Of a DNA stretch of 34,687 bases, positions 2,533-28,900 are shown in pieces (within the stretch, counting starts at the first letter, position 1; each line of letters starts with the position of its first letter). The stretch is from Utricularia gibba (Eukaryota > Plantae > Magnoliophyta). The position numbers and the translations under genes were made by a program. The stretch is from assembly GCA_002189035.1 (NCBI GenBank), contig NEEC01000124.1, positions 1-34,687 of the forward strand, written 5' to 3'. Below the pieces are notes generated by a model. The model saw only the letters and a program-made list of their open reading frames with translations, had not been told where the DNA came from and did not search any database.

Positions 2533-3863
2533 CCTTTAGATTACTTTTCATAGACCGATTAAACCAATCTAATTTAGACCCCATCAAATGCCCAAATAAT
2601 ATTGACATTATAAATTCCCATTATTTTTATTTTTTATGTTGGTTCCTATTGTAAATATTCATTTTTTCATAAACCTAATTTTTTGTTTTTTTTTTGCAAA
2701 ATAGGTTGATGCACTCTTATTACCCATATTCTTATATGATACCAGTTGCTTTGAATATCCAAACTTCATAATCTTACGTTTTTTACTTTGAGAAAAATAT
2801 TAATTTAAAATTAAAATAATCATTCTATTTAAACATATTATTTCTCGTTTATAATCAATATAGAGTATCATCATTAGATCTATTGCCTTACATTATTTCT
2901 AATCTTAAACAATTAGCATTTTCGTTAAATACGACTTCATCCACTATTTGTACGAGCCCTATTTGTCGTCATCATCATCGCCGATGCTAATGGCAATCGG
3001 CACCACGTGTGCAATGCTCCCATCGCAGCCACAGACAGCCAGCTGCTGTGTTGTGGCCATGCAGTTTGGATTTGATCCTGCTTGGTCAAAAGGCAAAAAA
3101 TTGAATCTATTTTTTTATTTTAATTATTAAGTTTAATATTATCATACCTTTCATAATTTAATATTAAATCGAAAATCATAATTAATTTTTTTCATTATGT
3201 GCTTTTGAAAAATACTTATTCTAGGGTCTTAGAAAATATTTGTGTAAATTTTATTGCGTTGTAATGTTTAAATTATAAATTCGTTTGATGATTGAGTGAA
3301 AAATATGAATTTTTTACTTAATGGAAAATAATCCCTAAATAATATTAGCACTATAGATCCCCAATCTATAATTTGAATGTTTTTTCTCCTTTATTTATTA
3401 ATTTTGAATTTAGAAGTGTGAGGTAGCTAGCCCCACCTATGGCTATAGATGCGAATAAGGGTAGAAAGTGGAAATAGTCTGGTTTATAGACGATCGGCAC
3501 ACCAAATCAGTCAACCCGACCCGACTCCGGTTTGATAACCCAACCAAGCTATCGATGCTGATTCATTAGGCTCCCTTTAGATTTCATTTCATGTGCAGAG
3601 AAAACTCAAAATCTTGTTCTGTTCGTCAACTTAGACCTGTTTGGTGTCTCCTTTTGGGGAGGCTCAGGGAGCTTGCTCAAACTCACATTCGAATTGATAT
3701 ATAAGAACAAAGGAAACGATGCAAACAAAGAAGAGATCTTGAAAGAGAGAGCTCACCCTAAATCAGAAAAATGGAAGAGATACACAACAGAGCAAACAGC
3801 AGATGAAATGAAAACGATGAAAGCTTGTGGTAGAAAAGTACCTTGTGTAGTAGTCATCAGAGA

Positions 3864-6782
3864 TCACTTGCTATCACTGTTATTGAGTCCCAAGTTTTTC
3901 TTCATATCTCTAGAGAGACTGAACTGCAGGGTGTTGTGCCATGGGAATAGTGTACGTGTTACAGGGAGCTTCCGCCGGAGGTCCTGCAATAGTCAAAAAA
4001 GCGAAAACCATGAAACTGCTAAGCATGCATTCTAGCGCTGTGCTTTGAAAGAAGAGGTGGCTACTTAAAACATTGAAACAAAGAATATGCTGCAGAACGA
4101 TTAGGATAAAGATTTGAAGGAATTGGAGAAACTTTATGGTGATAAAAATAGACTTGTACATAGACCAAATCTACATGTTGAAGATAAATAAATCAATGGG
4201 AATACCTTGAAGGTTGTGTCAGGTAATTTGGAGTAGGAAACCTGAAAACAAAATCACTTCCAGTAAAATAGAAAGTTAATACCGAATGCATTATAATGCA
4301 CAGGCAAAATGTGACACCTGAAGATAGTTTAGATATTCTGCCTCGTGGTGACGAATTATGTTAGTCAATGAAACTGCAGAATCATCAGGTGACTGAAAAA
4401 TAACTAATCATTATTGTCTGTTTAATCAGAAAGTACTCTAAGAATGTGAAAATGTCTCCCCACCAAGATCGATTTCATGTTAGTATTTATCTATATCAAA
4501 TTCTGCAGAGGATAAATAAATGTGGATTCCAATTACCTGAAGTATGGTTGAATCCTTGCACTCTTTCTTTGCATCTAACTGGACATTGCCCTCCTCAAAA
4601 TAGTGAGCCTCCACCTGGTTCAAACAAATAGCATGTCTTACTGAATCAAACAGTATATATGAAATCATTAAACAACAGGAAAATAATTTTAACCAAATAA
4701 CTGAGCACTGTACCAACACACAAGATATTTACCAGCAGCTTGCCTGTTAATTCCACGATTTGCAAATCATTCTTGAACTCCATAACCCACTTAGACAGCC
4801 AGCAACCATTGCTGCAAAAAAAAAAAAAAAAAAAGAGATGGGACGCTGAAAATAGGTTGTACGTTGAAGTTACATGGTATCTCCAAAGGAAAAAGGAAAA
4901 AAGAATAAGCATAGAAAACATCGTGTTAGATTGTCCTCTTCAACCAGATATTTCATCTTGGAAGCAAGACCGAAAAACCCACAGATGTAAACTATTTCAA
5001 CACATGCACCATACCAAAAATTTTGAGGAGTATTTTTAATGGAAGAAATCACAACAACAAGCTCAAACTCTGAGCCTGCTTCTTCCACATCTTTTCCACG
5101 GGTACAATACACAGAACTTACTCCCTTGGGATATGCTTCAGCAACATACTTCATGACTTCAGCATCTAAGGCCCTCTGCCAAAAAGAACTTTAATACTAA
5201 CAGAAGAAAATCAAGATAAAGCTCAGCATATCCAAACAGAACTAGGAAAAGAAACAATTCATAAATCTCCTTCACAGAAATTTTATTAAAAAAAGATTGT
5301 ATTTTAACATGATCAGAAAATGAAGCAAAGGCATTCCAAATATTGAAGTATAAAAGAAGTCCAGTTATGCCAAAGACATCCATGTGAAATGTCAAAGGGG
5401 TTTATGGTTAAATTTCACTAAAATCGATAATTTCAGTCAGAAAGCCAAGATCCCGAGGAGCTTAAAAAAAATCACTCATGAGGAAAAAACGCAAAAATAT
5501 CATGAAGCACAATTTCTTGGCAAAAAAAATAAAAAATAAGCATCAAAAGTACCGATATTCTTCAACATATGAAGAAGGAAGCTCTTCGTCAGTGGCTGCT
5601 CTTGTACCTTCACATAACTGAACAGGGAAGCACCATGGTTTAATAGGAATATAGTGTAGTGCTATCTAACACTATCAAGCGAGTGCCACTTCAGCAAGAT
5701 GAAGCAACAAGCATCGTTTGTATCAAAATCCATCACTATTTTATTCAATTTCATGATCATGTCAAGAGAAGAAAAAGTAAATGGAAGTTTTTGGGAACTC
5801 AAAAACATCTTTTTGCTCATTCACAAGCAAGGAGCATTCTAGTTCAGGCAAATGGGTTATAGTTGAATCCTGGCCACAGTTACAGCTTAACAACACGTAT
5901 CCTAGGCTGGATACAAACTGTTCACGAACTACGCACATGCTAGCATCAAAAAGGAAAAGAAAAAGCTCACCTGTTTTACATGGTTAACAATTGCAACCTG
6001 GGTAGTCCTGGGATCAAGATATTCGTTCTCAACAATCTCATTGTATGACGTAACGAGAACCTATAAAGAAATATAAACTAAATGATGTGAATCTCACAAG
6101 AATTGATGGAACAATGCGACACAGGTCACCATGTTTGAAACAAATTCGAAACTACATAAATATTGAAAAATTTGCAGATGCCAAGCTAGTAGCTTAAAAA
6201 TATTTGTGCAAAAGCCAATGAAATCACAGTCAGAAAATCACTGCATAGATTTCTCATCAATTAGCAGTTCTCGATTTCTTTAGGGGTCTGGTCTTCTCAC
6301 ATGTTAGCTAGAAAATTGATAACCGTAAATTAAAAGGATACCATGCATATAGCAGATAAGATCTGGCATCTCCATACAAAATTAAAAAAAAACTGTCGAA
6401 CAGCTACAACAAAGACAACATAGAAAGCGATAGAAACTAAAAGAGCAACTTTTCACACTTTTAATAAACGCGTAGTTCCAGATTACCTCACCGCTTCTAT
6501 CGGGAACCTCAAGACAGATCATGTGGTCCTTATTGTACACCGGAAACGCCTCTGCCGCGGCGGCTTCAAATAGCTCCTCATCCCTCAAAAGTTCCCTTAC
6601 ATCTGCATTTTCAGGAAAACAACTTACAAATCCATGCTTGGGGCTTGAGTAGTGCGCACAAAAGGATATTGCAAACCTTTAGCAACGTAAGAAATTTCAC
6701 CGGCCGGAGAATTTAGCAGAAACCATTTTGCGAATTCGATCTTCTGCTCGCCGGTGACTTCCGGCGCTGATTCTTCCTCCAT
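3864..6782 (-). CDS. CPA: F-actin capping protein subunit alpha, 10 exons; apparent 1-nt deletion at the start of exon 5
   Basis: Exons 6782-6677, 6602-6487, 6060-5971, 5617-5553, 5175-5015, 4811-4733, 4614-4537, 4392-4318, 4241-4206, 3983-3864, all GT-AG. Motifs KIEFAKWFLLNSPAGEI, EAYPKGV, HYFEEGNVQLD, DLRRKLPVTRTLFPW. Spliced length is 926 nt, one short of a multiple of 3. Confidence 0.93.
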
Positions 6783-7418
6783 GATCCGACAAACAAATTC
6801 AAGGATTTGAAAAAAAAAAGTGCAAACTTTTGAATCCACAGATCAGGCTCCCATCATCATTTGGGTTGAATTCTTCTTTTCAAAATGAATATATATCATT
6901 GATTATTAATTACGTTACATAATAGAAAGTGTATTTTTTAATTCTCATGAAAAATGTCACAATTTCAAATTGAAGGGTCCGTCCCAAGTTATGTCAAACA
7001 TTATTCCCGTGCTTGCCTTTTGGGGATATGAATTAAATGAATTCAGATTATTTAAATATAATTTATTCGTATATTTCCTACATCTACTTATCATTTAAAA
7101 ATTCGTAAATATAGATTTTGAAGAGATTTGTTGGATAAAAGAAATAAAAAACTATTTTGAAATATTTACATAAAATTAAAAATAAATTAAAAAGTACTAA
7201 TTTGTTACTTTTGCAGAAATAATTCTTTCCGTGTAAATTTAAAAGTATTTTTATTTTTGAAGTTGAAAACGTCATAATGCAAAATTGTTTTTATTTTACA
7301 AAAATAGAAATGGATCTCATGAAATTTTTCAAAAGGGTGATTTAGAAAATCTTTTGATGTGTGTTGATTTTATTAGAATAAATAATTATACATTCGAAAA
7401 TTAAAATAATAGTATTAA

Positions 7419-9498: not shown

Positions 9499-12400
9499 AT
9501 GGCCGCCGCCGCTTCTATTGCCGTCACCGTCGTGTCTTCTGGTTCAGGTTGTGGCTTTTCGAGCAAGCCTGAGCCGTGCATCACCTGCGCTAGCTTGTTT
9601 GCTATCCGCCGTCGAACTGCCTGGCCATTGAGCAAACTGGTACGTCACAATGCGTTGGGAAGGCCACGACTTTTGTGTTTCTGTTTTGTATGAAAAGTTG
9701 ATTTTTTTCGTGTTCAGGGAACTGGGACGGGGATTTATTCTTCTGTGTTTCGCGCGAAGGCTATGGCGCAAACTCTTTCTAATTCAGCAGTGGAGAGTTT
9801 GTCCTCGGGTTCTGGTACTTCTTCCTTCCTAATGAGATTTGTTAGGGAGTGGCAACTTTGCTGTTGTTCTCAAAATTGCATGCGCTCCTTTCTAATATCA
9901 AATTCTCTTATGCTTTTTTAAGGAAAGAGGCAAGCTTTGGTTTCATTGTCGGACAAGAGGGACTTGGAAATTCTTGGCCGGGGACTCCAAGAGCTGGGGT
10001 ATTCATTATTTTATTTAATTTCTTCATGGTGATTTGGAAGATGGGTTGTATTTTGAAGACTAACTCTTATAGTTCATCTCCTTTTTCCACTGAGTAGAGG
10101 GGATAAGTAATGGATGCCTCATGTTAACATTACTCAAGAGTTGCTTTCTTAGTGTGAACGCTTGCACTCGATTGAGATATTCACTAATGACGTATCCATG
10201 TTTCAAGGTTCAACATAGTTTCCACGGGAGGGACGGCCGCATCCATTGAAAGTCTTGGGGTCCCCGTTACCAAAGTGGAAAAACTTACTTCTTTTCCTGA
10301 AATGGTGTTTCTCTAGGCATTTTTTTGTCTGCCTTTCATTATTTTGTATAATCTAAGTGCCTGCAATTTCCTTTTACATTTGTTTTCATGCCCTGTGAAA
10401 AATCATTGTTGCCATTTCATTGCCATAATCGAATGCTTTCTCACCCTTTCTCGTATTTGAACAGCTTGATGGTCGTGTGAAAACCTTGCACCCAAACATT
10501 CATGGAGGCATCCTTGCAAGAAGAGATCAGAGGCATCACATGGAAGCTCTTGAGAATCATGGAATCTGTGAGTGAACATTTTTTTTGTAGAACTATGTTT
10601 TGGAGTTCAGGCATCTTTGCATCATCCTTCCATTCTTTGCATCTGTGAGTAAAACGTTTTCATCATCGGAAGGTTAAATCTTTTGTTTTCTTTTTTCCGT
10701 TTTTCAGTTTCATTCAGTGTTTCTCTTTTAGTGCACGATTAATCATAATTAATTACCTCCATATGAAATGGACAATATGGTTTGGTGACTTGCTTATTGA
10801 TGAAAACGAGCTCCAAAGTAATTAGCATTATACTTAAATATAGTTCGGGTGACTTTTTCTTTGATATTTTTTTTCCATTCTCTTTTGACGTCTAGTCCAT
10901 CATTTGTATGTAAACTTGTGTTTCTGCAGGTACATTTGATGTAGTCGTAGTTAATTTATATCCCTTCTATGATAAAGTTTCGGCTTCTTGTGGGGTATCT
11001 TTTGAAGATGGGATTGAAAATATCGATATTGGTGGACCTGCCATGATAAGAGCTGCGGCTAAGGTACATGAGGCTCAAACACTGATGCTTCGTTTTTGTA
11101 GTCAGAGCATTAACTTTTTTTGGTTTTCCCCAAGGACCCCGTAAACTTCCTCTTAGAGACCTGAGCAAAACTATAACTTCTCGAGGTTTCATTATGCACT
11201 CTGATAGATTTCCATATACAGAGGAGATTGTTATCTTCATGTTTTTCTCTTCTCTTTAACTTTTTGTTATGTGTATATGTGTGAGGCCGGATTCCTTCAT
11301 ATTACTAATGTGGATAAACGTATCTTTTTTCTCTGCAGAATCATAAGGATGTTCTAGTTGTAGTAGACTGCAATGATTATCCAGCACTAATAGAATATTT
11401 GAAAAACAACCAGGACGACCAGCTCTTTCGTAGATGGCTAGCTTGGAAGGCTTTTCAGCATGTAGCTTCATATGACTCTGCTGTCTCTGAATGGTTGTGG
11501 AAGAGTACTGAAACAGGTAGTTCCAATTTCTTCATTCCCAGTTCATTTAACGTATTGTTTCCCATGGATGTGAAAAGAATACACCACTTTGGAGTAGCAG
11601 TTTGCATTTAAATGTATAATGTGCAAAATCTTTCACAGGCAAGTTCCCCCCCGCCATGGCAGTACCTCTGTCTCTCATTAGTTCACTTCGGTATGGTGAA
11701 AACCCTCACCAGAAAGCTGCATTTTATGCTGATAAGTCTTTAGCAGAGGTAAATGCTGGTGGCATTGCCTCTGCTATACAACACCATGGAAAGGTATGAT
11801 AATCCCCTATTTCATTGAGCCTGAGTTGTTTTCCTGTAACCATTTTTAGCTGATTTGATAACCATTTTTTGGTTTTGCTAAATATGTTTCTCAGTTCAGT
11901 GTCTTTTATCATGCTTCAGTTAACGAGTGACTCATGAAATGTTTTCATCATGCAGGAGCTCTCTTATAACAATATCTTAGATGCAGATGCTGCCTGGAGC
12001 TGTGTATGCGAATTTAGCAAACCAACCTGTGTTGTGGTGAAGCATACCAATCCTTGCGGCGTGGCGTCGCGCGACAATATTGTGGATGCATACAGACTGG
12101 CTGTAAAAGCAGATCCTGTTAGTGCTTTTGGAGGCATCGTGGCCTTCAATGTTGAAGTCGACGAGGTATCACACATCTGACTCCTCAACATGCAGTTTTT
12201 ACTTCGTAACTTAAGATCTGTTTGATGCATCTTTAAAAAGATAACTCTAAAAAAAGTGATTCTCTATATTGAAGAAGCATTTCAGTGTTTCAATTCTATG
12301 TAAAGTAAAAATAGTGTGTTTTGTCTGAGAATTACTTCTAGAAGTAATTTTATTAAAACTGAAGTTGAAGTTGCACCAAACAGATTCTTGGATTGTTGTT

Positions 12401-13283
12401 AATGCATGTCGCATTCCTCATTTTTACGAATGAACATGTCGTGGGCATATGGTAACTTTGATCGTTGCAAAATCCTCAGGCCTTTCGATGTATTCATCCT
12501 ATTTGCTTCTCAGGATTTAGCCAGAGACATAAGAGAGTTCAGGAGTCCAACTGATGGAGAAACCCGCATGTTCTATGAGATCATCATCGCTCCCAAGTAC
12601 TCCGAAAAGGGCCTCGAAATACTCCGAGGGAAGTCCAAGAACTTGAGAATCCTCCAGGCAACCAAAAGCACCGGAGGAAAGATTTCACTGAGGCAAGTCA
12701 GCGGTGGCTGGTTGGTTCAGGAGGCAGATCAGCTAAGCCTGGAGGATATCCAGTTCAGTGTCCGCTCAGAGAAATCCCCACAGGAAAATGAACTCGACGA
12801 CGCCAAATTCGCATGGCTCTGCGTAAAACATGTGAAGAGCAACGCCATTGTCATAGCCAAGGTCTGCATTTCCCCTGACTTCCTGCACACTTCACTAGTT
12901 TTCACTGCAGCAAGTTTATTTTGGACAGAACAACTGCATGCTCGGTATGGGATGCGGCCAGCCGAACCGTCTCGAGAGCTTGAGGATTGCGATGAAGAAG
13001 GCAGGGGATAACATCACGGGAGCTGCTCTGGCCAGCGACGCGTTCTTCCCATTCGGTACATTTTCCTTCTAGAAGGCGTGCTTGGAATCCTCCATCACCT
13101 CTTAGTTTTGTGTTGTGGTGCATCGTCGCAGCTTGGAACGACGCCGTGGAGGAAGCGTGTCGAAGCGGCGTCGGCGTGATCGCAGAGCCGGGCGGCAGCC
13201 TGAGGGATCCCGACGCGGTGGACTGCTGCAACAAGTACGGAGTTGCACTCGTCTTCACCCAAGTAAGGCACTTCAGGCATTGA
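9499..13283 (+). CDS. purH: Bifunctional AICAR transformylase / IMP cyclohydrolase with N-terminal transit peptide, 12 exons, frame intact
   Basis: Exons 9499-9639, 9718-9814, 9923-9998, 10208-10304, 10465-10567, 10930-11063, 11339-11516, 11639-11793, 11956-12165, 12514-12861, 12929-13055, 13132-13283; phases are consistent. Motifs [65 protein letters not shown]. Confidence 0.96.
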
Positions 13284-13621
13284 TGGACGACCAAACTAGT
13301 GAACCTGATGGAAGAACGGGGGAGTCCATTTTATTTATTACTACTTATTTTTAAAAAAATAAAATTACATCATATCATTTTTAATGCATTAATTAATCAA
13401 ATAGAGAAATATCAATTTTTTAATATTATTAATCTAAGAATATAATATGTACGATTTATTTTTTGTCTTGTAATTTAAAATATATATTAAAAATAAAGAA
13501 AAATTATTTTTTAAATTACAATGTTTGAATTTTTTTATTTTATAGTTGAACACTTTAGATTATATAAAATAATTTTATCAATAAACTCATTTTATGGGTA
13601 TTCTGATAAAAAATTTGTCAA

Positions 13622-13839
13622 AATTAATAATCACAATTATCATTTGAGCTTCTTTCTTTTTTTTATTCAATAATTATGTGTTTTTTTCAAATAAATCATA
13701 AAAATTTTTAAATTATATTTGATTCAATAATTATGGTTCAGCACAATTATTAAAAATTATAGAAATTTTTTTGAAAAAAATACATAATTATTAAATCAAA
13801 AAAAGAAGTGAGTGCGAATGATAATCGTAATAGTTAGTT
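13622..13839. mobile_element. AT-rich fold-back (long inverted repeat), MITE-like
   Basis: Left arm aattaataatcacaattatcatttg...ttcaaataaatc is the imperfect reverse complement of right arm ...ttgaaaaaaatacataattatt...gaatgataatcgtaatagttagtt. No TSD identified. Confidence 0.6.
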
Positions 13840-14865
13840 CTTATGAGTTTTGGGTTGTAATGCTATAGAATGAATTTATTTGTAAATTTTTTGTTAAGAT
13901 TTTACATAATATAAAGTATTTAACTGTAAAATAAACATAAATCAAATATCATGATTTAAAAAAATATTTTCTTTAAAATTAATTATTATAGATTATTCCA
14001 ATTTTTAATTATTTATAATTTCTATTCAAACTTTCATTTAATTTTTACTTATTTTAAATTTCTTTATATTTCTACTCAAAATCCAACTTATTTTATAAGT
14101 TACCTTTGCCTACTTATCAAAATAAGTCATCAATTTTTTCAAATGTTATGCACACAACAACTACTTATTTAGATTCTACTCATTTAATAAATTATATTTA
14201 TAAATTAAGTAAAAATTATGAAATAAGTTGGGTAGATTATATTCTAAGTTTTTGTATAATATCAAACATTAATATAATCTCATTTGACCATATCATTTTT
14301 AATTCGACATACTTGATTATAGGAAAAAAATTAGATTTAATTTTTTAATTTAAAAAATATTTGAATATAATTCATTATATTCAATACTATTATATATTTA
14401 ATATATATTTTTACTTTTAAAATTGTTGTGTGTCTGGTGTGGATCATTTTTAAGGATGAAAATAAATATTTAATTGTATATATCATTTGATATTATATAT
14501 GAAATAATACTTTTGCACTGAATTTAAAAAAATGAAAAATTAAATACAATTAATATTAGAGAGAATAATTAACAATTTAATCGCTATATTTTCGTGACGG
14601 CTGCTGTCTAAACAAGCATCCAATCAATCCGTTAGGTCAAAATTCCTGATCCCTTTGTTTCGTTTCCAACTTGATTGTAGTTACCTTGTTTTTTCTTTCT
14701 TCGTCGTAAAGTTGACTTTGGAAGCGGAAAAGTTTCAGTGCATCATCTTCTTTTTGTAAGGTTTTGTGCGTTGTTTTTTTTTTTTTTTTAACGATTTGAG
14801 GAACGCATGCCCATGTTCAAATTCCTGGTCAGGTCGTGGGTGCTGAGCCGGTGGCAAACGCGGGA

Positions 14866-16577
14866 ATGGAAGGCGGTGATTGGAGGGGTCAGCTGCAACA
14901 AGATTCTAGGCAGAGAATTGTGAATGAAATGTAAGAATTAGGTTTTAAGTTTAGGTGGAGAGTGTCTTTTAAGACTTTGAGATAAGTATCAATTATGATG
15001 CTTTCGATTGCAGAATGGAGACGCTGAAGAGGCATCTTCCTTATTCTGGACCAGAGGGATTGCAAGAACTCAAAAAATCGCTGCCAGGTTTGAGGAGAAG
15101 ATATACATCGCAGCAACAAGCCAGGTTTAAATGAAATTTCCCCTGTTTCCTCCTGCGTACACGCTGAGCGTTACATGTATAATGACCGTTCCTGTTGTCT
15201 TTTAATTGGACATACAGTCAGATTATCTAAGAAAAATATCTATGAAGATGTTTACTATGGAGACAAAGTCTCAGAATCCGGATTCTATGCAGCCTGGTGG
15301 TGGAAGTAATTCGCAGGACCCAGGTACAGAATATCGCTGAAGTATATGAAAAGAGTTCTTTTTTTTTTGTTGTTGCCATTAAGAAGGTGACTCTCCTTGC
15401 TCTTGTGGCATTTGGGCTCGGTATATTCTCACCGGCACACCATCCCCTTTATAATGAGCCTCAACTTTTCATCATTGATGAGCCGATATACCTACCCATT
15501 CCGGCAACTTGTGTATCGCATACCTATGGATCCAATGGCATACTCCGAAAAATTTTCAACTCTTCTTGATTGTTGCAAATGAATGTGATTAAGGGGTCTT
15601 CTGGTGTTATTGTCCAAGTTGGATTTGATATTAGTGTCTGCTTCAAGTTATGGGGGATTGATTTCCTGACTGGAGCGGTTGATAACTTGCCAGATTTAAA
15701 GACTTTTTCCATAGCTGATTCCATGCATCGCTAGAATGCTGTCTAAAGACCATTTGAAAATCTAGTTCTGGGAAAGCTTCTAGTTTTCTTGCCAAATCAT
15801 AAAGTAAAGTGGTATTGGTATCCGAAAAGGGATTACAAATCATTCATCTTACAGGAAATATACGGAGCCCTGTCTAAAAGTTGTTTCTATCATGTTATCT
15901 GATTAGAGTCATAACACAGACGAATATCATCTTTTTTTTTATTATTTTTGATTGTTTGGAGCGAGCAGTAGTCTGCTAATATGTCTTGGTATTGCTTACA
16001 TGATTATTATCTGCACAATATGAATTGTTTTATACTGTTAATGCTGCCAGGATTTCGTCTCTGGTTATTTTTATCTTGAAATAAGTACTTGTACGCTACT
16101 GTGTTTATGATGATGCACTGTTTTATATGAGTTATTGTGTCACCATATGTTCAATCTCTCTGCATGCTTAACGCAGCTTCTCAAAGCATGCAGTCCCAAA
16201 TACAAAATCAGGTCCAACAACTTCAACTTCTGATGGTTTCCAGTCAGTCTCAGGCGCGGCTGCAGATTTCATCCCAGAATTTACATAATGATATTGCTTT
16301 GAATGGCGTTCCAAATTCTTCTGGTTTGTCATCTGGTCTTCCCGCTATGAGTGGCACCATGCCCAATATTCCTGGGCCAAATTCTAACATTCAGAACATG
16401 CAAAGCCTTGCAAATATGGCTTCTAGTGCAATTGGGAATTCAATGGGCCAAGGTATGCCTGCTGGCACCTATGCTAATCCGCAGAGGCAAGTTCAGAATA
16501 GGCAACCTGTTGCTAACCAGGAGCACGCACAGCACTCCCAGCGGTCTTATCAATATGTATACAATCAGCCGGTATTT
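14866..16577 (+). pseudogene. 5'-partial MED15a copy (exons 1-3 encoding the KIX domain plus the first ~400 nt of exon 4)
   Basis: Exons 14866-14930, 15014-15124, 15218-15323, 16177-16577 match the full gene. Exon 2 has A6 instead of A7 at 15072-15077 (frameshift), and homology breaks at 16577. Confidence 0.9.
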
Positions 16578-17805
16578 GTGACATTTTTTATGAGAATTAA
16601 AAAAAAACATATTTTATCATGTAACATAATTAATAATTAATAATATATTAATTTTGAAAAGAAGAATTTAATCCAAATAATTCGTGGATTTAAAAGTGTG
16701 CACTTTTTTTTTTCAAATCCTTGAATTTGTTTGTTAGATCATGGAGGAAGAATCTGCGTTGGAAGTCACTAATGAGCAGAAGATCGAATTCGCAAAATGG
16801 TTTTTGTTAAATTCTCCTGCTGGTGAAATTTCTTATGTCGCTAAAGGTTTGCAATTTGCTTTTGTGCTCACAATTGAAGCCTCAATAATGGATTTATAAG
16901 TCATTTTCTTGAAAATGCAGATGTAAGGGAGCTTTTGAGGGATGAGAAGCTGTTTGAAGCTGCTGCGGCAGAGGCATTTCCGATATACAATAAGGCTCAT
17001 ATGATCTGTCTTGAGTTTCCTGATAGAACCGGTGAGGTAATTTGAAACTACATGTTTATTGAAAGCGTGAAAGGTTGTTCTTCTTATTTCTATTGCTTTC
17101 TGTACTATCTTTGTTATAGCTGTTTGACAGTTTTTTAAAATTGTTTACAGAGAGAATATATCTTATCTGCCATATGCATGGTATCTTTTTAATTTACAGT
17201 TATTAGTTTTGTAGCTAACATATAAGAAGATCAGATCCCTAGAGAAATCGACAACTTGTAATTGATGAGAAATTTATTCTATGTTTTTTTTATTGTGATT
17301 ATGTTGGTTTGCACAAATATTTTTAAGCTACTACTTTGTTACCTACAAAATTTTTGTTAATTATGTAATTGTCATTATATTTTAAGTTTGGTGACTAATG
17401 TTGCATTGTTGCATCAATTCTCTTGGATTTTATATCATTAAAGTTTATATTTCGTTATAGGTTTTGATTACATCATACAATGAGATTGTTGAGAACGAAT
17501 ATCTTGATCCAAGGACTACCCAAGTTGCAATAGTTAACCATGTTAAACAGGTGAACTTGGTTTTTTCCTATTCATGGTAGCATGTGCATAGTTCATGAAT
17601 AAATTCATTTTCATCCATTTTTGGATTTTAAGCTTAGATTTTCACTAAAAATATGGACATTTTTTTTCTGGTTGCCGTGATCTTTGAGAAATTCATAGAA
17701 GGTTGTCTGATTTCTAGTGTGAGCCATTTGTCCAAGTCAGTAAATTTTATAGCATACGTGTTGTTAATTTGTAATTATTTTTGAGATTCAACTATAACCC
17801 ATTTC
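16576..17805 (+). pseudogene. Inverted partial copy of CPA (proximal promoter/5'UTR, exons 1-3, start of intron 3)
   Basis: Reverse complement of ~6962-5855. Exons 16741-16846 (MEEESALEVTNEQKIEFAKW), 16921-17036 and 17461-17550 have open frames and intact GT-AG sites; ~150 bp extra sequence at ~17600-17750. Confidence 0.93.
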
Positions 17806-17809
17806 TTAA

Positions 17810-18320
17810 AATTTTTCATTATTTATAATTTCTATTCAAATTTTTACTTAATTTTTATTTATTTTAAATTTTTTTATATTTCTACTCAAAATCCAACTTA
17901 TTTTGTAAGTTACCTTTGCCTACTTATCAAAATAAGTCATCAATTTTTTCAAATGTTGTGCACACAACAACTACTTATTTAGATTCTACTCATTTAATAA
18001 ATTATATTTATAAATTAAGTAAAAGTTATGAAATAAGTTGTGTAGATTATATTCTAAGTTTTTGTATAATATCAAATATTAATATAATCTCATTTGACCA
18101 TATCATTTTTAATTCGACGTACTTGATTTATAGGAAAAAAAGTAGATTTATTTTTTTTTAATTTAAAAAATATTTGAATATAATTCATTATATTCAATAC
18201 TAATTGCATATTTAATATATTTTTTTTTACTTTTAAAATTGTTGTGTGTCTGGTGTGGATCATTTTGAAGGATGAAAATAAAAAATGTAATTATATATAT
18301 ATAATTTTATGTTGTATATG
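17810..18320 (+). repeat. Third copy of a ~0.5 kb AT-rich piece of the purH-MED15 spacer
   Basis: Matches ~14000-14500 and ~22080-22590; the same spurious ORF MPTYQNKSS appears at 14106, 17916 and 22186. Confidence 0.9.
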
Positions 18321-18335
18321 AAATGAAATGATCTC

Positions 18336-18560
18336 TTCCTCTATTCTATCAAGGAACAGGTGAAGATCATTGTGGCATGTGCCGTTCTACACAACTTTAT
18401 ATGGAATGAAATGGATGTTAATCCATTTGAAAATGAACTCGATGATGAACATGAGGAAGATGATACCGAGCCAGATATTAGCATAGTAGAATCAACCCTT
18501 ATGAGATTGCAAGGAAGTTATATGATGAATGGAAAACATGACATATGCAGATTCAACTTT
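18336..18560 (+). pseudogene. C-terminal fragment of a PIF/Harbinger DDE transposase
   Basis: FLYSIKEQVKIIVACAVLHNFIWNEMDVNPFENELDDEHEE matches the Q..II.AC..LHNF motif ending DDE_Tnp_4-type plant transposases; the catalytic N-terminal part is absent. Confidence 0.75.
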
Positions 18561-18879
18561 GGTATTAATTCATTGTTGGTTTATACCTTTTCTTTATTAT
18601 AATATTTCAACAATGGATTCCAAATTTAGTTTCAATTGTTATCATTTTGTGTTTTTGGGCTGTGTTGACATTGCTTTTGGTTATTCATTATATATGCTAT
18701 TCATTATACATGTTTGTTTCTAGCATTAATTATAATGTTTTATAATATTGATATTTTAGTATAAATTATATATGTTATTTATAGAAGTACATAAAATAGG
18801 TATACTACATCTATTTTTATTTACATATTTTCTAATGTATTTTAAAACAAATAATTATTAATACTTTAGACAATTAATA

Positions 18880-19260
18880 TAAAATAAATAATACATTCAA
18901 TCATTAGAAAAGTATAAGGATATAATGCATTTTTTTTATTAAAAATAAATAATTAATAAAAATAATACATTCGATACTTATCATTTTTAAAAATAAAGTA
19001 TATTTTTTTAATGACAAAATGATGCATTCGATCCTCAAAAACATAAATATAGAATGTAATATTTTTATTAAAATAAATAATACATTCGATTATTATCGCT
19101 TCTAAAAATAAAATATATTTTTTATTATAAAATGATGTACTCGATTCTTAGAAAATATAAGAATATAGTGCATTATTTTTATTAAAAATAAATAATACAT
19201 TCTAATCTTATGTATTTTAAGGATTAAATGCATTGTTTATTTTATTAAAAATATTTCATT
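18880..19260. repeat. Degenerate AT-rich tandem repeat (~113 bp unit) inside the transposon spacer
   Basis: Motif aaaataaataatacattc recurs near 18881, 18957, 19070 and 19184 with similar downstream sequence. Confidence 0.6.
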
Positions 19261-20027
19261 CTATCCTTACATGTTATATGAGTTGAGTATGTTGTTTATC
19301 CATAACGTATGTGCGTTGTTGACTTACGTGGGTTACCCATAACCCAATTCTGTATGACATGCTGATGACATGGACGTGGGTCACATAACCCATGCCCATG
19401 TGCAATGCCGATGACACGAATGTCGTTCGTGTGAGTTGCCGATGGATGTGGATAACGCATGAGATTGTCAATGGACGTGGGTTATGTGTAACCCATGTTC
19501 GTGTTGCGTTTGATTATATATGTATATAATTTAATATTGTAGTATTAAATGAATATAAAATATTTATATCCATGTTAAATGTACAAAATAAAATTGAAAA
19601 TTTAATTGATTTGATTTTTAATAAATAAATCAAATCTTAATTGATTGATGTTATTTTATATGTGAATATGTATTTTAGTAAAAATAGTTATGAAAGAATA
19701 TTGTTTAATATATATTTATGACTATTATTTTTATAAAAAAGATATAATAAAATGACATATTTAATGAAATATATTCTAAAGATATTTAAAATTATAATAT
19801 ATTTTTAATTACATTTAAATGATGATTAGTGAAGCTAATTTTTCCCAACAAAACATTACGTAATACAAAAAAGGCAATCTTGTAATCTTAATCCATTGTT
19901 ATACATAATGCAGCAAAATAGACAACAAAACACATACTCCTACATAATACAAAAGAGATGTAGTGTGCAGCATCAAATCATTGTTTTTGGGATAATAAAA
20001 GAGGCAATGCTTCATTAAAGTTGTTTG

Positions 20028-20991
20028 TCATATAATCTGAAGTAGATCAACAACCCACTCAAGACGATTGTTCTCACTCATTTCAAGAAAACATTCTATT
20101 TTTGGTTGATCACTAAAAATCCTTGCATATACCTCGCCTTTTTGCTTAGCAGTCAAACCCATTGTTCCTACAATTTCTGGCACAGTCTTTCTATCATATG
20201 GGTTCCCACACATCAATGCAATCGTCATGGTGAACATATCCTTATTATTTGCAGCAATAGTATCTAGCTTCTGGACCAAGTTGTTCATCAATCCAATGGG
20301 ATCATCAAATGCCTTCCTCTTACCCAACCTTTTTGATTTTGTTCCAGCAGTCTCAATGCAGGAACTGCATTGATGGCTGAAGACTTTGTACCAAAAGATC
20401 CTGCTTCTAGATTACTGGTTGATACCTCAGGTGGCCCTTGAGGAGGTGCAAACTCATCAAGTCCATCTTCTTCATTGCATCCAAAACCTTGATCTCCACT
20501 TGCTCGATCTTTTTCAAATATCTCACACCATGCCTCATACATTGGGAACGATTTATCCTTTAGTGTAGAAAACTCGACCTGTCATGCTGCAAAACAAAAG
20601 TATAAAAATATGAAAACTTAAGGTATCTTAAAAGAATAGTTAGAGGTAGTTCACCTCTAAAAGCTCGTTCCATTGCTTGTCGGTGACATTTATCATTTTG
20701 GTTATCTGGTTGAAGCTATTTCCAGACCTATTCACAAAATCATACACGGCACTCCATTGATTCTTCCAAATTTTTATCTTAGATTCGATATGGGGTGTGG
20801 CTCGCAAATCACAATTTCGCAACTTCAATTTCAAAGCCATTTCTGGATCTTTCTGATAGTTACCCCTGAAACCATTTTCACAATGCCCTCCGTTAACAAT
20901 ATACTCACGCAAACAGTCAAGGAATACGTGCTCTTTGGCTGGAACCCATGAGCGTCTAGCACGCTTTGATTTCTATTGTGTTTTCCACCAT
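20028..20991 (-). pseudogene. PIF/Harbinger Myb/SANT-like DNA-binding ORF, frameshifted
   Basis: RRSWVPAKEHVFLDCL...NGF...PHIESKIKIWK...WNELLE, a GT-AG intron (~20652-20590), then KSFPMYEAWCEIFEKDRASG and a C-terminal LEWVVDLL; several frameshifts are needed to join the pieces. Confidence 0.8.
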
Positions 20992-21311
20992 GTGTGAATC
21001 TGCCATTTGCGGCTAAAGACTTGAGAAGCAGGCTTAGGGTTCGTAAAATCACCAAGAACGCTGCATTTGAGTAAACTCAACGCACATCCAAAATTCCCTC
21101 GATTTATTTCAGTAAAATAAGGACATTTTCATTATTTTAGATATACAAACAATTATCTCATCCCAATTATTACAATATAAATAAAACACATCAAAATACA
21201 TTCCCATTTAATCCTAACCTACTATCCTACTTAATTTTATCTTGAGATAACTTATCCCACGAACCAAACGCAAATGCAACCTTAGTTTTGTGTTGCGGTG
21301 CAACATCGCAG

Positions 21312-21403
21312 CTTGGAACGACGCCGTGGAGGAAACGTGTCGAAGCGACGTCGGCGTGATCGCAGAGCCGGGCGGAAGCCTGAGGTATCCCGAAGTGGTG
21401 GAC
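21312..21403 (+). pseudogene. Orphan purH exon 12 fragment
   Basis: [30 protein letters not shown] is preceded by the acceptor gcag; ~97 bp covering the rest of the exon and the stop (13225-13321 in copy 1) are deleted. Confidence 0.9.
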
Positions 21404-21711
21404 GAGCGCATTTTATTTTTTACTACTTATTTTAAAAAATTAAAATTACATCATATCATTTTTAATCCATTAATTAATCAAATAGAGAACTGTTAATTTT
21501 TTTAATATTATTAATCTAAGAATATAATATGGATTTATTTTTTGACTTGTAATTTAAAATATACATTAAAATTAGAGAAAAATTATTTTTTAAATTACAA
21601 TGCTTGAATTTAATTTTATTTTATAGTTGAACACTTTAGATTATATAAAATCCAATTAATAAGTTTATCAATAAACTCATTTTATGGGTATTCTGGTCAA
21701 AAATTTGTCGA

Positions 21712-21921
21712 AATTAATTATCACAATTGTTATTTGCACTATTTTCTTTTTTTATTCAATAATTATGTTTTTTTTCAAATAAATCATAAAAAATTTTAAG
21801 TTATAATTGATTCAATAACTATGGTTCAGCAAATTATTAAAAATTATGGGAAATTATTTGAAAAAAAACATAATTATTGAATAAAAAAAAGGAGAGCAAA
21901 TGATAATCGTGATAGTTAGTT
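21712..21921. mobile_element. Second copy of the AT-rich fold-back element
   Basis: Duplicate of 13622-13839 within copy 2. Confidence 0.6.
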
Positions 21922-22980
21922 ATGCTGAGTTTTTGGTTGTAATGCCGTAGAATGAATTTATTTGTAAACTTTTGGTTAAAATTTTACAAAATATAAAGTA
22001 ATTGACTGTAAAATAAAAATAAATCAAATATTATGATTTAAAAAATATTTTCCTTAAAATTAATTATTATTGATTATTCCAATTTTTCATTATTTATAAT
22101 TTCTATTCAAATTTTTACTTAATTTTTATTTATTTTAAATTTCTTTATATTTCTACTAAAAACCAACTTATTTTGTAAGTTACCTTTGCCTACTTATCAA
22201 AATAAGTCATCAAGTTTTTCAAATATTGTGCACACAACAACTACTTATTTAGATTCTACTCATTTAATCAATTATATTTATAAATTAAGTAAAAGTTATG
22301 AAATAAGTTGTGTAGATTATATTCTAAGTTTTTGTATAATATCAAATATTAATATAATCTCATTTGACCATATCATTTTTAATTAGACATACTTGATGTA
22401 TAAAAAAAAAACTAGATTTAATTTTTTTAATTTAAAAAATATTGAATATAATTCATTATATTCAATATTAAGTTGTATATTTCATATATATTTTTATTTT
22501 TAAAATTGTTGTGTGTTTGGTGTGGATCATTTTAAAGGATGAAAATAAATATTTAATTATATATATCATTTGATATTATATATGAAATAATAACTTTTGC
22601 ACTGAATTTAAAAAAAATGAAAAATTAAATACAATTAAATTTATAGATTGCTTATGGTATTATTAGAAAATATAATTAATAATTTAAAAAATGAAAAGAA
22701 AATCGCTATATTTTCGTGATGGCTGCTGTCTAAACAAGCATCCCAATCCGTTAGGTCAAAATTCCTGATCCCTTTGTTTCGTTTCCAGCCTGATTGTAGT
22801 TACCTTTTTTTTTCTTTCTTCGTCGTAAAGTTGAGTTTGGAAGCGGAAAAGTTTCAGTGCATCATCTTCTTTTTGTATAAGGTTTTGTGCGTATTCTTTT
22901 TTTTAACGATTTGAGGAACGCATGCCCATGTTCAAATTCCTGGTCAGGTCGTGGGTGCTGAGCCGGTGGCAAACGCGGGA

Positions 22981-25900
22981 ATGGAAGGCGGTGATTGGAG
23001 GGGTCAGCTGCAACAAGATTCTAGGCAGAGAATTGTGAATAAAATGTAAGAATTAGGTTTTAAGTTTAGGTGGAGAGTGTCTTTTAAGACTTTGAGATAA
23101 GTATCAATTATGATGCTTTCGATTGCAGAATGGAGACGCTGAAGAGGCATCTTCCTTATTCTGGACCAGAGGGATTGCAAGAACTCAAAAAAATCGCTGT
23201 TAGGTTTGAGGAGAAGATATACATCGCAGCAACAAGCCAGGTTTAAATGAATTTTCTCCTGTTTCCTCCTGCGTACACGCTGAGCATTGACCGTTCCTGT
23301 TGTCTTTTAATTGGACATACAGTCAGATTATCTAAGAAAAATATCTATGAAGATGTTAACTATGGAGACAAAGTCTCAGAATCCGGATTCTATGCAGCCT
23401 GGTGGTGGAAGTAATTCGCAGGACCCAGGTACAGAATATCGCTGAAGTATATGAAAAGAGTCATTTTTTTTTTGTTGATGTTGCCATTAAGAAGGTGACT
23501 CTCCTTGCTCTTGTGGCATTTGGGCTCGATACATTCTCACTGGCACACCATCCCCTTTATAATGAGCCTCAACTTTTCATCAATGATGAGCCGATATACC
23601 TATCTATTCCGGCAACTTGTGTATCGCATACCTATGGATCCAATGGCATACTCCGAAAAATTTTCAACTCTTCTTGATTGTTGCAAATGAATGTGATTAA
23701 GGGGTTTTCTGGTGTTATTTTCCAAGTTGGATTTGATATTAGTGTCTGGTGTGTAGATCACATGTTATGAGTGCTTATGAAGTTGGGGGCTTCAGGCTAT
23801 GGGGGGATTGATTTCCTGACTGGAGCGGTTGATAACTTGCCAGATTTAAAGGGTTTTTCCATAGCTGATTCCATGCATTGCTAGAATGCTGTCTAAAGAC
23901 CATTTGAAAATCTCGTTCTGGAAAAAGCTTCTAGTTTTCTTGCCAAATCATTAAGTGAAGTGGTATTGGTATTCGACAAGGGATTACAAATCATTCATCT
24001 CACAGGAAATTTACGGAACCCTGTCTAAAAGTTGTTTCTATCATGTTATCTGATTAGAGCCATAACACTTTTGAATATCATCTTTTTTTTTACTATTTTT
24101 TATTTTTTGGATTGAGCAGTAGTCTGCTAACATCTCTTGGTGTTGCTTACATGATTATTATCTGCACAATATGAATTGCTTTATACTGGTAATGCTGCCA
24201 GGATTTGGTCTCTGGTTATTTTTATCTTGAATTAATTACTAGTACGCTACCTGTTTTATATGAGTTATTGTGTCACCATATGTTCAATCTCTCTGCTTGC
24301 TTAACGCAGCTTCTCAAAGCATGCAGCCCCAAATACAAAATCAGGTCCAACAACTTCAACTTCCGATGGTTTCCAGTCAGTCTCAGGTGCGACAGCAGAT
24401 TTTATCCCAGAATTTACATAATAATATTGCCTTGAATGGCGCTCCAAATTCTTCTGGTTTGTCATCTGGTCTTCCGCGATGAGTGGCACCATGCCCAATA
24501 TTCCTGGGCCAAATGCTAACATTCAGAACATGCAAAGCCTTCCAAATATGGCCTCTAACGCAATTGGGAATTCAATGGGCCAAGGTATGCCTGCTGGTAA
24601 CTATGCCAATCCACAGAGGCAAGTTCAGAATAGGCAACAACCTGCTGCTAACCAGGAGCAGGCACAGCACTCCCAGGGGTCTCATCAGTATGTATACAAT
24701 CAGCAGGTATTTATGAAGCCAAAGTACCAGACAGGTGGTATTCCACAGCAACCCATCATGCAATCTCAGGTCTCACAGCAGCAGCAACAACAGAACCTGA
24801 TGCTTCCTAATCATCTTCAGTCGTCGCAGCAGCCTGTTATTCAACCATCATTGAGGCAAACATCTTCACCAGCATCATCATCGTCTTCTACTCTCCAAAG
24901 TCAACAGTCATCTCTTCAGCATTCAAATCAATCTATGCTTCAACAGCCATCACAGTCGGTTCTTCGACAGCAGCAGCAGCAGCAGCCACAGGCTCCAGTC
25001 ATGCATCAGCAGCAAAACCCAATGTCTCAACACTCAATATTGCCTTCTCAGCAGCCGCACCATACTGCACAGCAGCCAAATGCTGCAAATATCCAACCAA
25101 GTCAGCTGATTGGCCAACAAAACATTGTTGTTGATACACAACAACAGCAAAGGATGATGCCGCAGCAGAATGCTATGCCCAACATGCAACAGCAGCATAC
25201 AGCCAGTAAGCAAAACAATATTCCAAGTTTGCTTCAGTCGCAATCAGCCGCCCAGCAGAATAATATCCCAAATGTGCATCAGCAGCAATTAGGCTCCCAA
25301 AACAACCTATCTGGATTCCAGCAGCAGCAAGCGGTTGGTATCCAACTTGGCAATTTTATCTTGCAACTTACTTTGAGCCTGTCTGTGGTTACAGTAATCA
25401 ATGTTTTGATGCAGCAACAGATGCAGGCGAGTATGTCAAATATGTTGCCTAATCAATCTCAATCGCAGCCAATGCAGCATCAGTTGATGTCACAGATGCA
25501 GTCACAGTCAGGGCATATGCAACAGCAGTTAGGATTGCAGCAACAGGCGAATGCATTGTCAAGGGACATGCAACAAAGGATTCAAGCATCTGTTCCCTTG
25601 AATCAACAGCCGACAACGGTTGATCAAAAGCCGATTATGCAACCTCAGAGAGTGATTGGTGAATCACAACTAAGTAAGTAGCTGGTGCTTTTGTAATAAC
25701 TCGGACATTTATCAAAGGAGAAAAAAATATGATAATGATATTGAGGCTCAGCTATTAGTGCAGGCCATGGATTCGAAAATTGAATGTTCTTTCCTTGTCT
25801 GGATTGTGCCGTATAATTCATTTACTGCTTTTAATCATGGTTCTCTTTTGCTTAATCTAACACTTTGAAAACTTAGCATCTCGAGATCCCTCGTCACAGA

Positions 25901-28900
25901 TGGGAAATTCAGGTGGAGATTGGCAAGAAGAAGTTTATCAAAAGGTATTACATCTAAGTGGAGATTGGCAACTGTGACCTGTCGCGTGTGCATTTTCTGT
26001 GTGAAGCTCCACTTTAGTCTTCCTAACTTTTGGGCTGATTGCAGATCAAATCCATGAATGAGATGTATTATTCTGAATTAAACGAAGCATACCAAAGAAT
26101 TGTTGCAAAGTTGCAGCAGGTGAGCTACTGTTTGATTTTCATTGTACTCTAATTGGTCACCTTTGATCAAGTGGTTGATTGGTGTGTTTTGTGCTTCACA
26201 ATCTGTGGTTATTTAAATTTGAAAGCTAATGTAGGTTTTGTTGATAGAAAGTAATCACGCGTGTATAATCCATCACTTAAATCGATTTGACGTATGACGT
26301 CTGGCTCTTGTTTTTTTTTTAAGAATACATTTCCTTCCAACTCTGTATCATTCAATTTCTATTGCCGTGTATCAAATTTTTATTCCCTCTTTCTTATACT
26401 TCTTTTCATCATTTTAACGTTTCATCAAGCTTTACCAATAAATCCTTGTTGCGTTTGATACAACTGAAATCGTTGATTTCTTTTTTCTTTTTTTTAAATG
26501 GGTATTTTGAATAAGGTGAGTAAATAACTGTTAAATAGGGGTAAATGAGATTATTCATTTAATTACTTATACGACAAGCACAATGCCTATAATCTACTTC
26601 TTAATGAGGCATATAAAGCACATAAAATTTCACCTTAATGCACTGCAAACTAGTCTCTCTTCAAACAAATTATTTATAAAAGGCCAGATTTATCTTTGAA
26701 AATTCACTTTGATTATCAACATTTTTATTTTCGACTGACTTTACTTCTGCTTTTGCAGCATGATTCGATTCCTCAAATGCCAAAGGGTGACCAATTTGAT
26801 AAGCTCACCTTTTTCAAGGGAATGTTGGAGCGATTGCTTTCATTTCTGAGAATTTCCAAGAATGAAATTCAACCAGCTCTTAAGGATAAGATGGTTCAGG
26901 TTGAGAAGCAGATCATCAGCATTCTGAATTCAAATAGGCCTCGAAAGCCTGTTTCTTCATTGCAGAAAGGACAACACATGCTTGCTGCACAGCAGCCTCA
27001 GCAACAACAGCCTCAAATTTCTCAGATGCAGACAAATGAAGGTCAAATGAATTCTCAGATACAGTCTCTGAATGGACAAGGTTCAGTTGTGACTAATTTG
27101 TCCAATCTGCAGCATGGTTCACTATCTTCAGCTTCTGGTGTTCCGAATTCTCGTCAGAGTATTATGGATATTATGCAGCATGGTTCGAATTTTGATGCAG
27201 GACAAGGAAATGCATTAAACCAGATGCAGCAAGTGGCTATAAACTCTCTGCAGCAGAACTCTGTGAGTGGTCCTCAGCAGATGAACATCCCTTCTGTGAC
27301 ATCCCAATCTGGTTTGACAACCTTAGCATCTTCTGTTAACCCATTACATGGAAATTCTAATATGATTCAGGGACAGCAAATAAAGCAGGAACCACTTATG
27401 TTAAACCAACAGTTGAAACAACAGTACCAGCAGCGACAGATTCAGCAGCAATATATACAAAGACAACAGATCATGCAGCAGCAACAGCAGCTCCAAGCAC
27501 ACCAACAAGCTGTCCAGATGCCTGGTCAACAAGTGACCCATCTTAATCAGATTAATGATGCAAACGATGTGAAATTGAGGCACCAGATGGCTGGAAAAAC
27601 AGGAGTTCTGCAGTCACATTCCTCTATCCAGCGGCCGGCCTATCATCATCAGTCATTCTCTATTTCCTCACAACAGGCTCCATCCTCACAGATTCCTCAT
27701 CATTCTTCTCCCCAAATGGAACAACAAAGTCTTCTGGCATCCCATACAAAAGTTGGAACTCCTTCACAATCTGCAAATTCTCCTTTTGTTGTCCCATCAC
27801 CTTCAACCTCGGTGGCTCCATCTCCCATGCTAGGTGATTATGAGAAGATTGTCTCTGTTGTTCCTTCACAGTCAAATGCTGGAAATAGCAATAATCTGCC
27901 GACACCTGCAGCATCTGTACAAAATCAGTCACTTGCCATTGGAACTCCTGGTATATCAGCCTCGCCTTTACTGGCAGAATTTTCCAACCCAGATGGGCCA
28001 CATGGTGTGTTGCCTAACATTATTCCTGCAACCTCGAATGTAGTGGAGCGACCACTTGATCGCTTGATAAATGCTGTCAGTGAGACTTTAACATCTTTTG
28101 TATTTAGACATTTCGTCCTTATGTAGTCTGAATTTCTATTTTATTTTGACAGGTAAAATCTTTGACTCCCACAGCTTTGAGTGCTTCAGTTAATGACGTC
28201 AGCTCTGTTGTCCGGTTGACTGACAGAATAGCTGGTTCTGCACCAGGAAATGGATCACGGGCTGCAATGGGTGAAGACTTAGTTGCTATCACAAAGTGTC
28301 GTCTTCAGGCCAGAAATTTCTTCAGTGCAGATGGGTCTGGCTGCACAAAAAAAGTTAGACGTTGTATCTCTGCAATGACTTCTAATGTTGTTTCGTGTAC
28401 TGGGACCATGAATGAGAGTTCCAAGAGTGCTGGTGGAAATGAATCCTATGGACAGTCCACTGAAGTTTCATCCAAGAAAAGGCCTAGAAATGATGTACTT
28501 CATCTTTTTTTTAAGCCTAAATTGATGCATGTTTTTATGGAGACTGCCAATGTTTAAATATCAATATGACATTTGTGTTATTGTTGCACACCTGTGAATT
28601 TAAAATAAACTAAAGCTGTTCTTATTTGCAGGTCAATCACGTGCTTGAGGAAGAACTGCATGAAATTAATGTGGAACTTATTGATACTGTGGTGCATATT
28701 AGTGATGATGTTGATCCAACTGCAGTAGCTGCAGCTGCTGAATGTGCAGAAGGAACTGTGGTGAAGTGCTGTTTCAGTGCTGTGGGTCTTGGCCCAAATC
28801 TGAAATCGCAATTTGCTTCCGCTCAGATGGTGAAATTTTGGACCTCTTGAGCCATCTTTTATTTTACTGTTTTCTTTTAGTCATCATTGTACCTTTCTTT

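Follow-up and report, generated by a model that had tools for sequence, protein, structure and literature searches.

Plant genomes commonly contain complex tandem duplications, but the junctions of these are seldom readable. In human genomic disorders, duplications of the fork stalling and template switching or microhomology-mediated break-induced replication type (FoSTeS/MMBIR) arise by serial local template switches, have junctions marked by microhomology or small insertions, and hold direct and inverted segments between direct copies. In maize, reversed-ends transposition of Ac/Ds elements gives rise to direct duplications in tandem (PMC3744419), and re-replication induced by their transposition gives rise to composite insertions (PMC4270019). 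Among the structural variants associated with mPing/Ping in rice recombinant inbred lines, breakpoints lie exactly at element termini, the element is found at a single breakpoint in four of nine cases, one variant is a deletion plus a duplication, and filler DNA is present (PMC7584900). Fillers of 8–131 bp, simple or mosaic and copied from nearby sites, are also left by double-strand-break repair in plants, the maize p2/p1 chimera being one case, and chimeric genes result (PMC2686159). In addition, abortive gap repair of PIF-like elements leaves truncated copies, including one-ended ones (PMC6327408). Here we analyze a 34,687-nucleotide stretch of the Utricularia gibba genome (GenBank assembly GCA_002189035.1, contig NEEC01000124.1, positions 1–34,687 of the forward strand; hereafter the window), in which two direct copies of a segment of about 3.5 kb are separated by a composite filler that ends exactly at the terminus of a half PIF/Harbinger element. 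The explanation that we favor, at slightly less than an even chance, is that the complex tandem duplication is real and fairly old, and that serial template switching during break repair or replication produced it while a PIF element occupied a TTA in the last intron of the gene purH.

In this locus, as in the maize Ac/Ds duplications, direct copies of kilobase length stand in tandem with extra DNA between them, and the terminus of a class II transposon coincides exactly with their junction. In maize the elements are of the hAT superfamily, transposon ends lie on both sides of the junction, target duplications are 8 bp, and two nearby termini are needed, whereas the element here is of the PIF/Harbinger superfamily, has one terminus, and shows no target duplication at the junction where the first copy meets the filler. 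The segments inserted by Ac re-replication are contiguous with the transposon ends, whereas the filler pieces here are not contiguous with the PIF site. The rice mPing variants belong to the same superfamily and, as here, have breakpoints exactly at element termini, but they are fresh, were detected with short reads, and are mostly deletions of 0.7–56 kb; no tandem duplication of kilobases with a filler of several pieces is reported among them (PMC7584900). Compared with the plant repair fillers, the pieces here are longer (0.5 and 1.2 kb), and longer synthesis, of the synthesis-dependent strand annealing (SDSA) or MMBIR type, is therefore indicated over simple end joining. Abortive gap repair usually yields internally deleted elements that keep both ends and have no link to a flank duplication, in contrast to the single end and duplicated flank of this locus. 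The FoSTeS/MMBIR model involves no transposon, whereas in the reading that we favor one of the switches would have landed in, or begun at, a resident transposon.

Structure of the duplicated locus

A first-pass annotation of this DNA had proposed the layout A-[B]-X-[B']-C, in which B and B' are the two copies and X is the filler between them, and self-BLAST of the window bore this layout out. Copy B extends from 13101 to 16581 and copy B' from 21282 to 24716, both on the plus strand. By BLAST, 13101–16581 matches 21281–24716 in direct orientation in three blocks of 91–95% identity, and a MAFFT alignment of the copies contains 181 substitutions over 3330 aligned sites (5.4%), 257 gap columns, and 31 indels. 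The C common to 13101 and 21281 is the last base of the transposon terminus, and its presence at both positions is a chance coincidence. The left edge of B falls inside the last intron of purH, 30 bp 5' of the last exon, and the right edge falls inside the Q-rich exon of a MED15-like gene. Between these edges lie the end of the last intron, the intact last purH exon, an intergenic spacer, the MED15 promoter, the KIX exons, and the start of the Q-rich exon. Copy B', whose first bases are TTA, contains a relic of the last purH exon, the spacer, the MED15 promoter, and the KIX exons (Pfam KIX_2 on 23088–23243), and continues uninterrupted into the remaining MED15 sequence of C. A whole purH is read through A and B, and a whole MED15 through B' and C.

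An assembly artefact, in which two haplotypes of one locus were set in tandem, is highly improbable. B and B' do differ in the length of one homopolymer, as such an artefact might show. Against it, one of the 31 indels that accompany the 5.4% substitutions measures 98 bp, the sequence contains no Ns, X is unique with four defined junctions, and both A–B and B'–C are continuous genes.

The filler X (16576–21281) had been described as an inverted copy of DNA from about 10 kb upstream, a third copy of part of B, and half a PIF element. All three constituents were recovered, and the upstream DNA, which had been placed only by its distance, was identified as the 5' end of the capping protein alpha (CPA) gene. 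X splits fully into three abutting pieces with no unexplained gap. The first, X1 (16576–17804, plus strand), is an inverted copy of CPA running from 6962 to 5850, a tract that comprises the CPA promoter, exons 1–3, and part of intron 3. It was delimited by BLAST, which gave an inverted match of 16576–17599 to 5921–6962 at 82.7% identity, by a short-word search, and by a Pfam match of exon 2 to F-actin_cap_A. The 210 bp at 17600–17809, beyond the BLAST match, continue this copy: the sensitive short-word search carries X1 across an indel to 17804, which corresponds to 5850. Against a dispersed repeat as the source of X1, the copy holds the CPA exons in order; the small repeat at 2–221, described below, is distinct from this question. 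The second piece, X3 (17806–18324, plus strand), is a direct third copy of B 14000–14505. Self-BLAST matched 17810–18324 to this interval, with 93.4% identity to B and to B' alike. X3 was rejected as a dispersed repeat: there are only three copies, and it has indels and flanks in common with B and B'. The third piece is the PIF remnant.

Four junctions join these pieces. At J1, where B meets X1, there is a 2-bp microhomology and neither a transposon end nor a target-site duplication. J2 (X1 to X3) contains about five bases (CTTAA) that come from neither piece, and J3 (X3 to the PIF interior) falls at GAAAT. J4 (PIF end to B', 21281/21282) consists of exactly the terminus and then TTA. All templates lie within about 10 kb in cis and in mixed orientation, one inverted and two direct. 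The source of X3 is 0.9–1.4 kb to the right of the PIF site and that of X1 is 6–7 kb to its left and inverted, neither being contiguous with that site. J1 and J2 have the appearance of end-joining or template switching, and the junctions as a whole have the anatomy left by repair or replication that switched templates serially across about 10 kb, not by transposase strand transfer.

The PIF/Harbinger remnant and its empty target site

The remnant occupies 18325–21281 and is one-ended; it was recognized from a Pfam match to Myb_DNA-bind_3, a Myb/SANT homolog, its terminus, and a lead from a protein atlas. Pieces of the Myb/SANT open reading frame (ORF1) lie at 20031–21076 on the minus strand, where the whole Myb_DNA-bind_3 profile is covered at 20643–20972 (minus strand, E = 3.8e-8). 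A word search with this Myb ORF returned one distant match, a Myb/SANT-like protein of Acer negundo (E = 3e-15). A piece of about 45 residues encoded at ~18339–18500 on the plus strand, ending in ...KIIVACAVLHNFI, is a candidate for the C-terminus of the transposase. Its neighbors in the protein atlas carry Plant_tran/DDE_Tnp_4 (score 0.94–0.97), which is taken as a lead; Pfam gave no match to it even at E ≤ 10, and a word search came back blank.

The right terminus (21257–21281), read directly from the sequence, ends in ...CGCAAATGCAACC at 21281 and is followed at once by TTA and then by homology to 13102 onward. On the reverse strand, 21260–21281 reads GGTTGCATTTGCGTTTGGTTCG, which resembles the PIF termini listed in PMC6327408; these are inverted repeats that begin with GG, contain GTTTGG-like bases, and are accompanied by a TTA duplication (PMC6327408). 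TTA, which suits the 3-bp TTA/TAA target-site duplication of PIF/Harbinger elements, flanks the one terminus present, and the left end is missing: no second terminus was found in the 34.7-kb window with up to 6 mismatches in 22 bases allowed. The half element is unable to move. Two repeat structures lie within the remnant. AT-rich units of 115 bp, in tandem and inverted, occupy 18880–19290, between the transposase tail and ORF1, and short inverted repeats richer in G+C, ACGTGGGTTACCCATAACCCA and TGGGTTATGTGTAACCCATGT, are found at 19326–19498, where they may represent a small nested element.

That B' begins at the TTA right after the transposon terminus, and that an identical TTA lies unoccupied at 13102–13104 in purH, had both been claimed in the first-pass annotation. 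Both observations hold, the boundary between terminus and TTA being exact. The empty site reads CTC-TTA-GTT (13099–13107, plus strand), lies in the last purH intron (the first-pass annotation had given it as intron 11), and carries no footprint. It fits eight of nine positions of CWCTTAGWG, a putative extended PIF target; the window contains 23 such sites, compared with 20 expected by chance, and 1834 TWA trinucleotides. An extended 9-bp target preference has been described for PIF (PMC6327408). It is as good as certain that a PIF element once integrated at this TTA.

A terminus exactly at the duplication junction, together with an empty donor site, is also what canonical alternative transposition of the Ac type (sister-chromatid or reversed-ends) would leave. 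The PIF ends of two chromatids or elements would have been inserted by transposase into a TTA in the MED15 exon to give A-B-[full PIF]-B' in one step, and the left half of PIF would later have been replaced by X1 and X3. The position in B' that matches the end of B reads GGTAT-TTA-TGAAG, with a TTA spanning the breakpoint, but a TWA is expected near any breakpoint by chance about one quarter of the time in such AT-rich DNA (a rough estimate). Ac performs such transposition in maize (PMC3744419), and in rice the termini of mPing mark deletions and one deletion-plus-duplication (PMC7584900). J1, however, joins B to CPA by its 2-bp microhomology with no transposon end or target duplication, the 34.7 kb hold no second terminus (a past partner being possible), and a second event, as old as the first, would be needed. 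We therefore regard alternative transposition as unlikely.

Relative ages of the pieces

The three copies of the X3 segment carry 12 (B), 14 (X3), and 17 (B') unique changes. The tree is a star, with the three copies equidistant (unrooted), and B, B', and X3 are of equal age. With B as its template, X3 dates from the first half of the interval that has elapsed since the duplication (p < 0.05 for an origin at 0.5 or later); with B' as its template, it dates from the first fifth.

X1 differs from CPA by 16.2% substitutions, among which 86 are C>T/G>A changes compared with 23 in the reverse direction, and its G+C content has fallen from 37% to 30%. Loss by C>T has affected 37.5% of CG, 25% of CHG, and 18% of CHH sites, with 7–12% in the reverse direction. 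Such loss of cytosine in all contexts is what a methylated and silenced fragment should show and, judged from the sequence, would be a signature of RNA-directed DNA methylation. When the C>T class is left out, the divergence of X1 from CPA is 7.8%, compared with 6.9% in the neutral flanks of B/B' (p = 0.40), and the A<->T changes amount to 3.6% and 2.1%, respectively (p = 0.07). Because the excess divergence of X1 is C>T decay, these figures appear compatible with the same age for X1 as for B/B'. According to the first-pass annotation, very different ages for the pieces would have told against a single event. The argument from raw identities is ruled out as it stands, since the difference between 83% for X1 and 91–95% for B/B' is mostly C>T decay; once this decay is allowed for, no very different ages were found among the dated pieces.

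The low identity (only 83%) of X1 to the local CPA gene, 10 kb distant, might instead indicate that X1 and J1 were copied from an ectopic template. Over 229 bp compared three ways, X1 has a branch four times as long as that of the local CPA (31 vs 8 changes, p = 0.0003), in agreement with such a source. The long X1 branch, however, is largely C>T decay, the intron-2 repeat is common to X1 and the local CPA, and a local template is simpler, all of which makes the ectopic template very unlikely.

Origin of the duplication

The first-pass annotation had suggested template-switch repair, and this suggestion is supported by the mosaic of three segments, drawn in both orientations from DNA no more than about 10 kb away, by the 2-bp microhomology at J1 and the roughly five extra bases at J2, and by the star tree of B, B', and X3. 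From the four junctions and the source of each piece, which are observed, we infer a single episode for all junctions, a PIF element older than the duplication, and a direction of synthesis that would have been as follows. A DNA end at 16581, within the Q-rich exon of MED15, would first have switched template to the promoter of CPA, some 9.6 kb back on the other strand, where 1.2 kb was copied. A second switch would have led to B 14000, where 0.5 kb was copied, and a third into the interior of the resident PIF. Synthesis would then have left through the right end of PIF and its TTA into B again, and continued onward. The full PIF at the original site would have been lost, either by an excision that was itself the starting break, as the first-pass annotation had proposed, or by clean excision later. 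The early age of X3 favors one episode about threefold, by a rough estimate.

Several observations weigh against a single episode with PIF in the live gene. Transversions between X1 and CPA amount to 5.6%, compared with 3.5% in the B/B' flanks (p = 0.014), and when only the excess of C>T changes is removed X1 is still about 10% diverged, compared with 6.9%. X1 could be up to about 1.5 times older than B/B'. In addition, an element of 5–6 kb may be poorly tolerated in a last purH intron of about 84 bp, which favors insertion into a dead copy.

These observations bear on a stepwise history, which we consider a serious contender, at rather less than an even chance. An older and larger tandem duplication with an inverted, full-length CPA filler would have made a MED15-KIX::CPA gene. 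PIF would then have inserted at the TTA of the dead copy of the purH intron in B', and a deletion from CPA intron 3 into PIF would have been patched by the 515-bp X3. B' would start at the PIF end because all DNA to the left of the PIF remnant had been deleted. An element that lands in a dead copy of the intron is neutral, whereas the live last purH intron measures only about 84 bp. The empty site resembles a putative preferred target of PIF, in keeping with ordinary insertion. Deletion junctions of plants can carry filler templated by neighboring DNA (PMC2686159), and X1 may be somewhat older than B/B', as the transversions suggest. Against this history, X3 is as old as the split between B and B', so all three steps must fall soon after the duplication; X holds no trace of further CPA or of purH to the left of 13101; and three events are needed where one could suffice.

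Within the single-episode reading, PIF transposase as the initiator takes up about half of the probability. In that case a cut at the purH-intron element would have been followed by long synthesis with three template switches, and one step would have yielded three products: a tandem duplication of kilobase size, a composite insertion, and a chimeric gene, MED15-KIX::CPA. We regard this as possible but doubtful. The inference of the first-pass annotation that PIF drove the duplication found no support in the tests made here: J1 has neither a transposon end nor a target-site duplication, the window has no second terminus, and the filler pieces are not contiguous with the PIF site, as they should be in a re-replication composite insertion. 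Two ordinary routes fit the picture equally well, namely a resident PIF that was copied with the tract and whose full copy later excised precisely, and a PIF inserted into the dead intron copy of B' that then lost its left half by deletion. Whether the transposon caused the duplication cannot be told from this sequence.

Gene content of the copies and of the window

The MED15 promoter and KIX exons of B stand upstream of the CPA exons 1–3 of X1 in one orientation (14866–17550). A word search with the ORF that spans the junction (16131–16637) gave no matches. An exhaustive HMMER search with CPA exon 2 for a KIX::CPA protein returned 60 matches, all at most 74% identical, and a KIX domain was found in none of the 12 that were examined; these 12 had been picked partly for long N-terminal extensions, and all were read-through ORFs of other plants. 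The KIX exon in B has lost 1 bp in an A-run at 15071, a loss that could equally be a homopolymer error. In B', 98 bp have been lost (13224–13321, against 21403), and with them the final 19 codons and the stop of the purH relic.

Divergence between B and B' is patchy. Over 14561–15698 (against 22660–23800), an interval that spans the MED15 promoter and the KIX exons with their introns, it is 2.7%, compared with 6.7–7.5% in the flanks (p = 4e-7). The low value suggests gene conversion, or constraint while both copies worked for a time. The AT-rich spacer 3' of purH contains an imperfect fold-back of about 500 bp with about 72% identity, present in both copies (13494–13986 and 21558–22071), which may be a foldback element or one like a miniature inverted-repeat transposable element.

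The window is AT-rich plant DNA with a G+C content of 35%. Genes were called from ORFs together with Pfam, exons being queried singly. A ribosomal protein S6-like gene lies at ~400–1640 on the minus strand, followed by CPA (3560–6842, limits approximate, minus strand), which was identified by F-actin_cap_A on exon ORFs. purH (AICAR transformylase/IMP cyclohydrolase; 9700–13283, start approximate, plus strand) was identified by AICARFT_IMPCHas and MGS on exon ORFs; its last intron (~13048–13131, 84 bp) and its last exon with the stop codon (13132–13283) were read from the sequence. C comprises the remainder of the MED15-like gene (24717–28126, plus strand), with an open Q-rich exon (24425–25678) and then another long exon. 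Pfam gave no matches on the Q-rich or the further long exon of C, and the name MED15 is applied to these exons because of the upstream KIX exon. A BTB/TPR gene begins at ~31.4 kb on the plus strand.

Part of CPA intron 2 (220 bp, at 6166–6392) recurs on the same strand at 2–221 with 89.5% identity, where it terminates in an A-rich run, and again in X1 at 17160–17355. The recurrence reflects either a repeat like a short interspersed nuclear element (SINE), residing in the CPA intron, or a third CPA fragment to the left of the window.

Implications

The locus is a well-preserved case of known kinds, unusual in its kilobase-sized filler and its MED15-KIX::CPA arrangement. All four junctions and the sources of all three filler pieces can be named to the base, and one of the boundaries is a transposon end whose target lies empty beside it. 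If the PIF cut was not the start, the locus is a well-preserved textbook case of template-switch repair.

PIF/Harbinger elements are far more abundant near plant genes than hAT elements. If a PIF cut did start the event, transposon-initiated duplication would extend from hAT to PIF/Harbinger, and this would be the first natural, fixed duplication and composite insertion tied to a non-hAT transposon, with the birth of a gene. Two neighboring genes were kept intact here while a promoter and KIX domain were joined to the 5' end of another gene, which links structural variation to the birth of chimeric genes.

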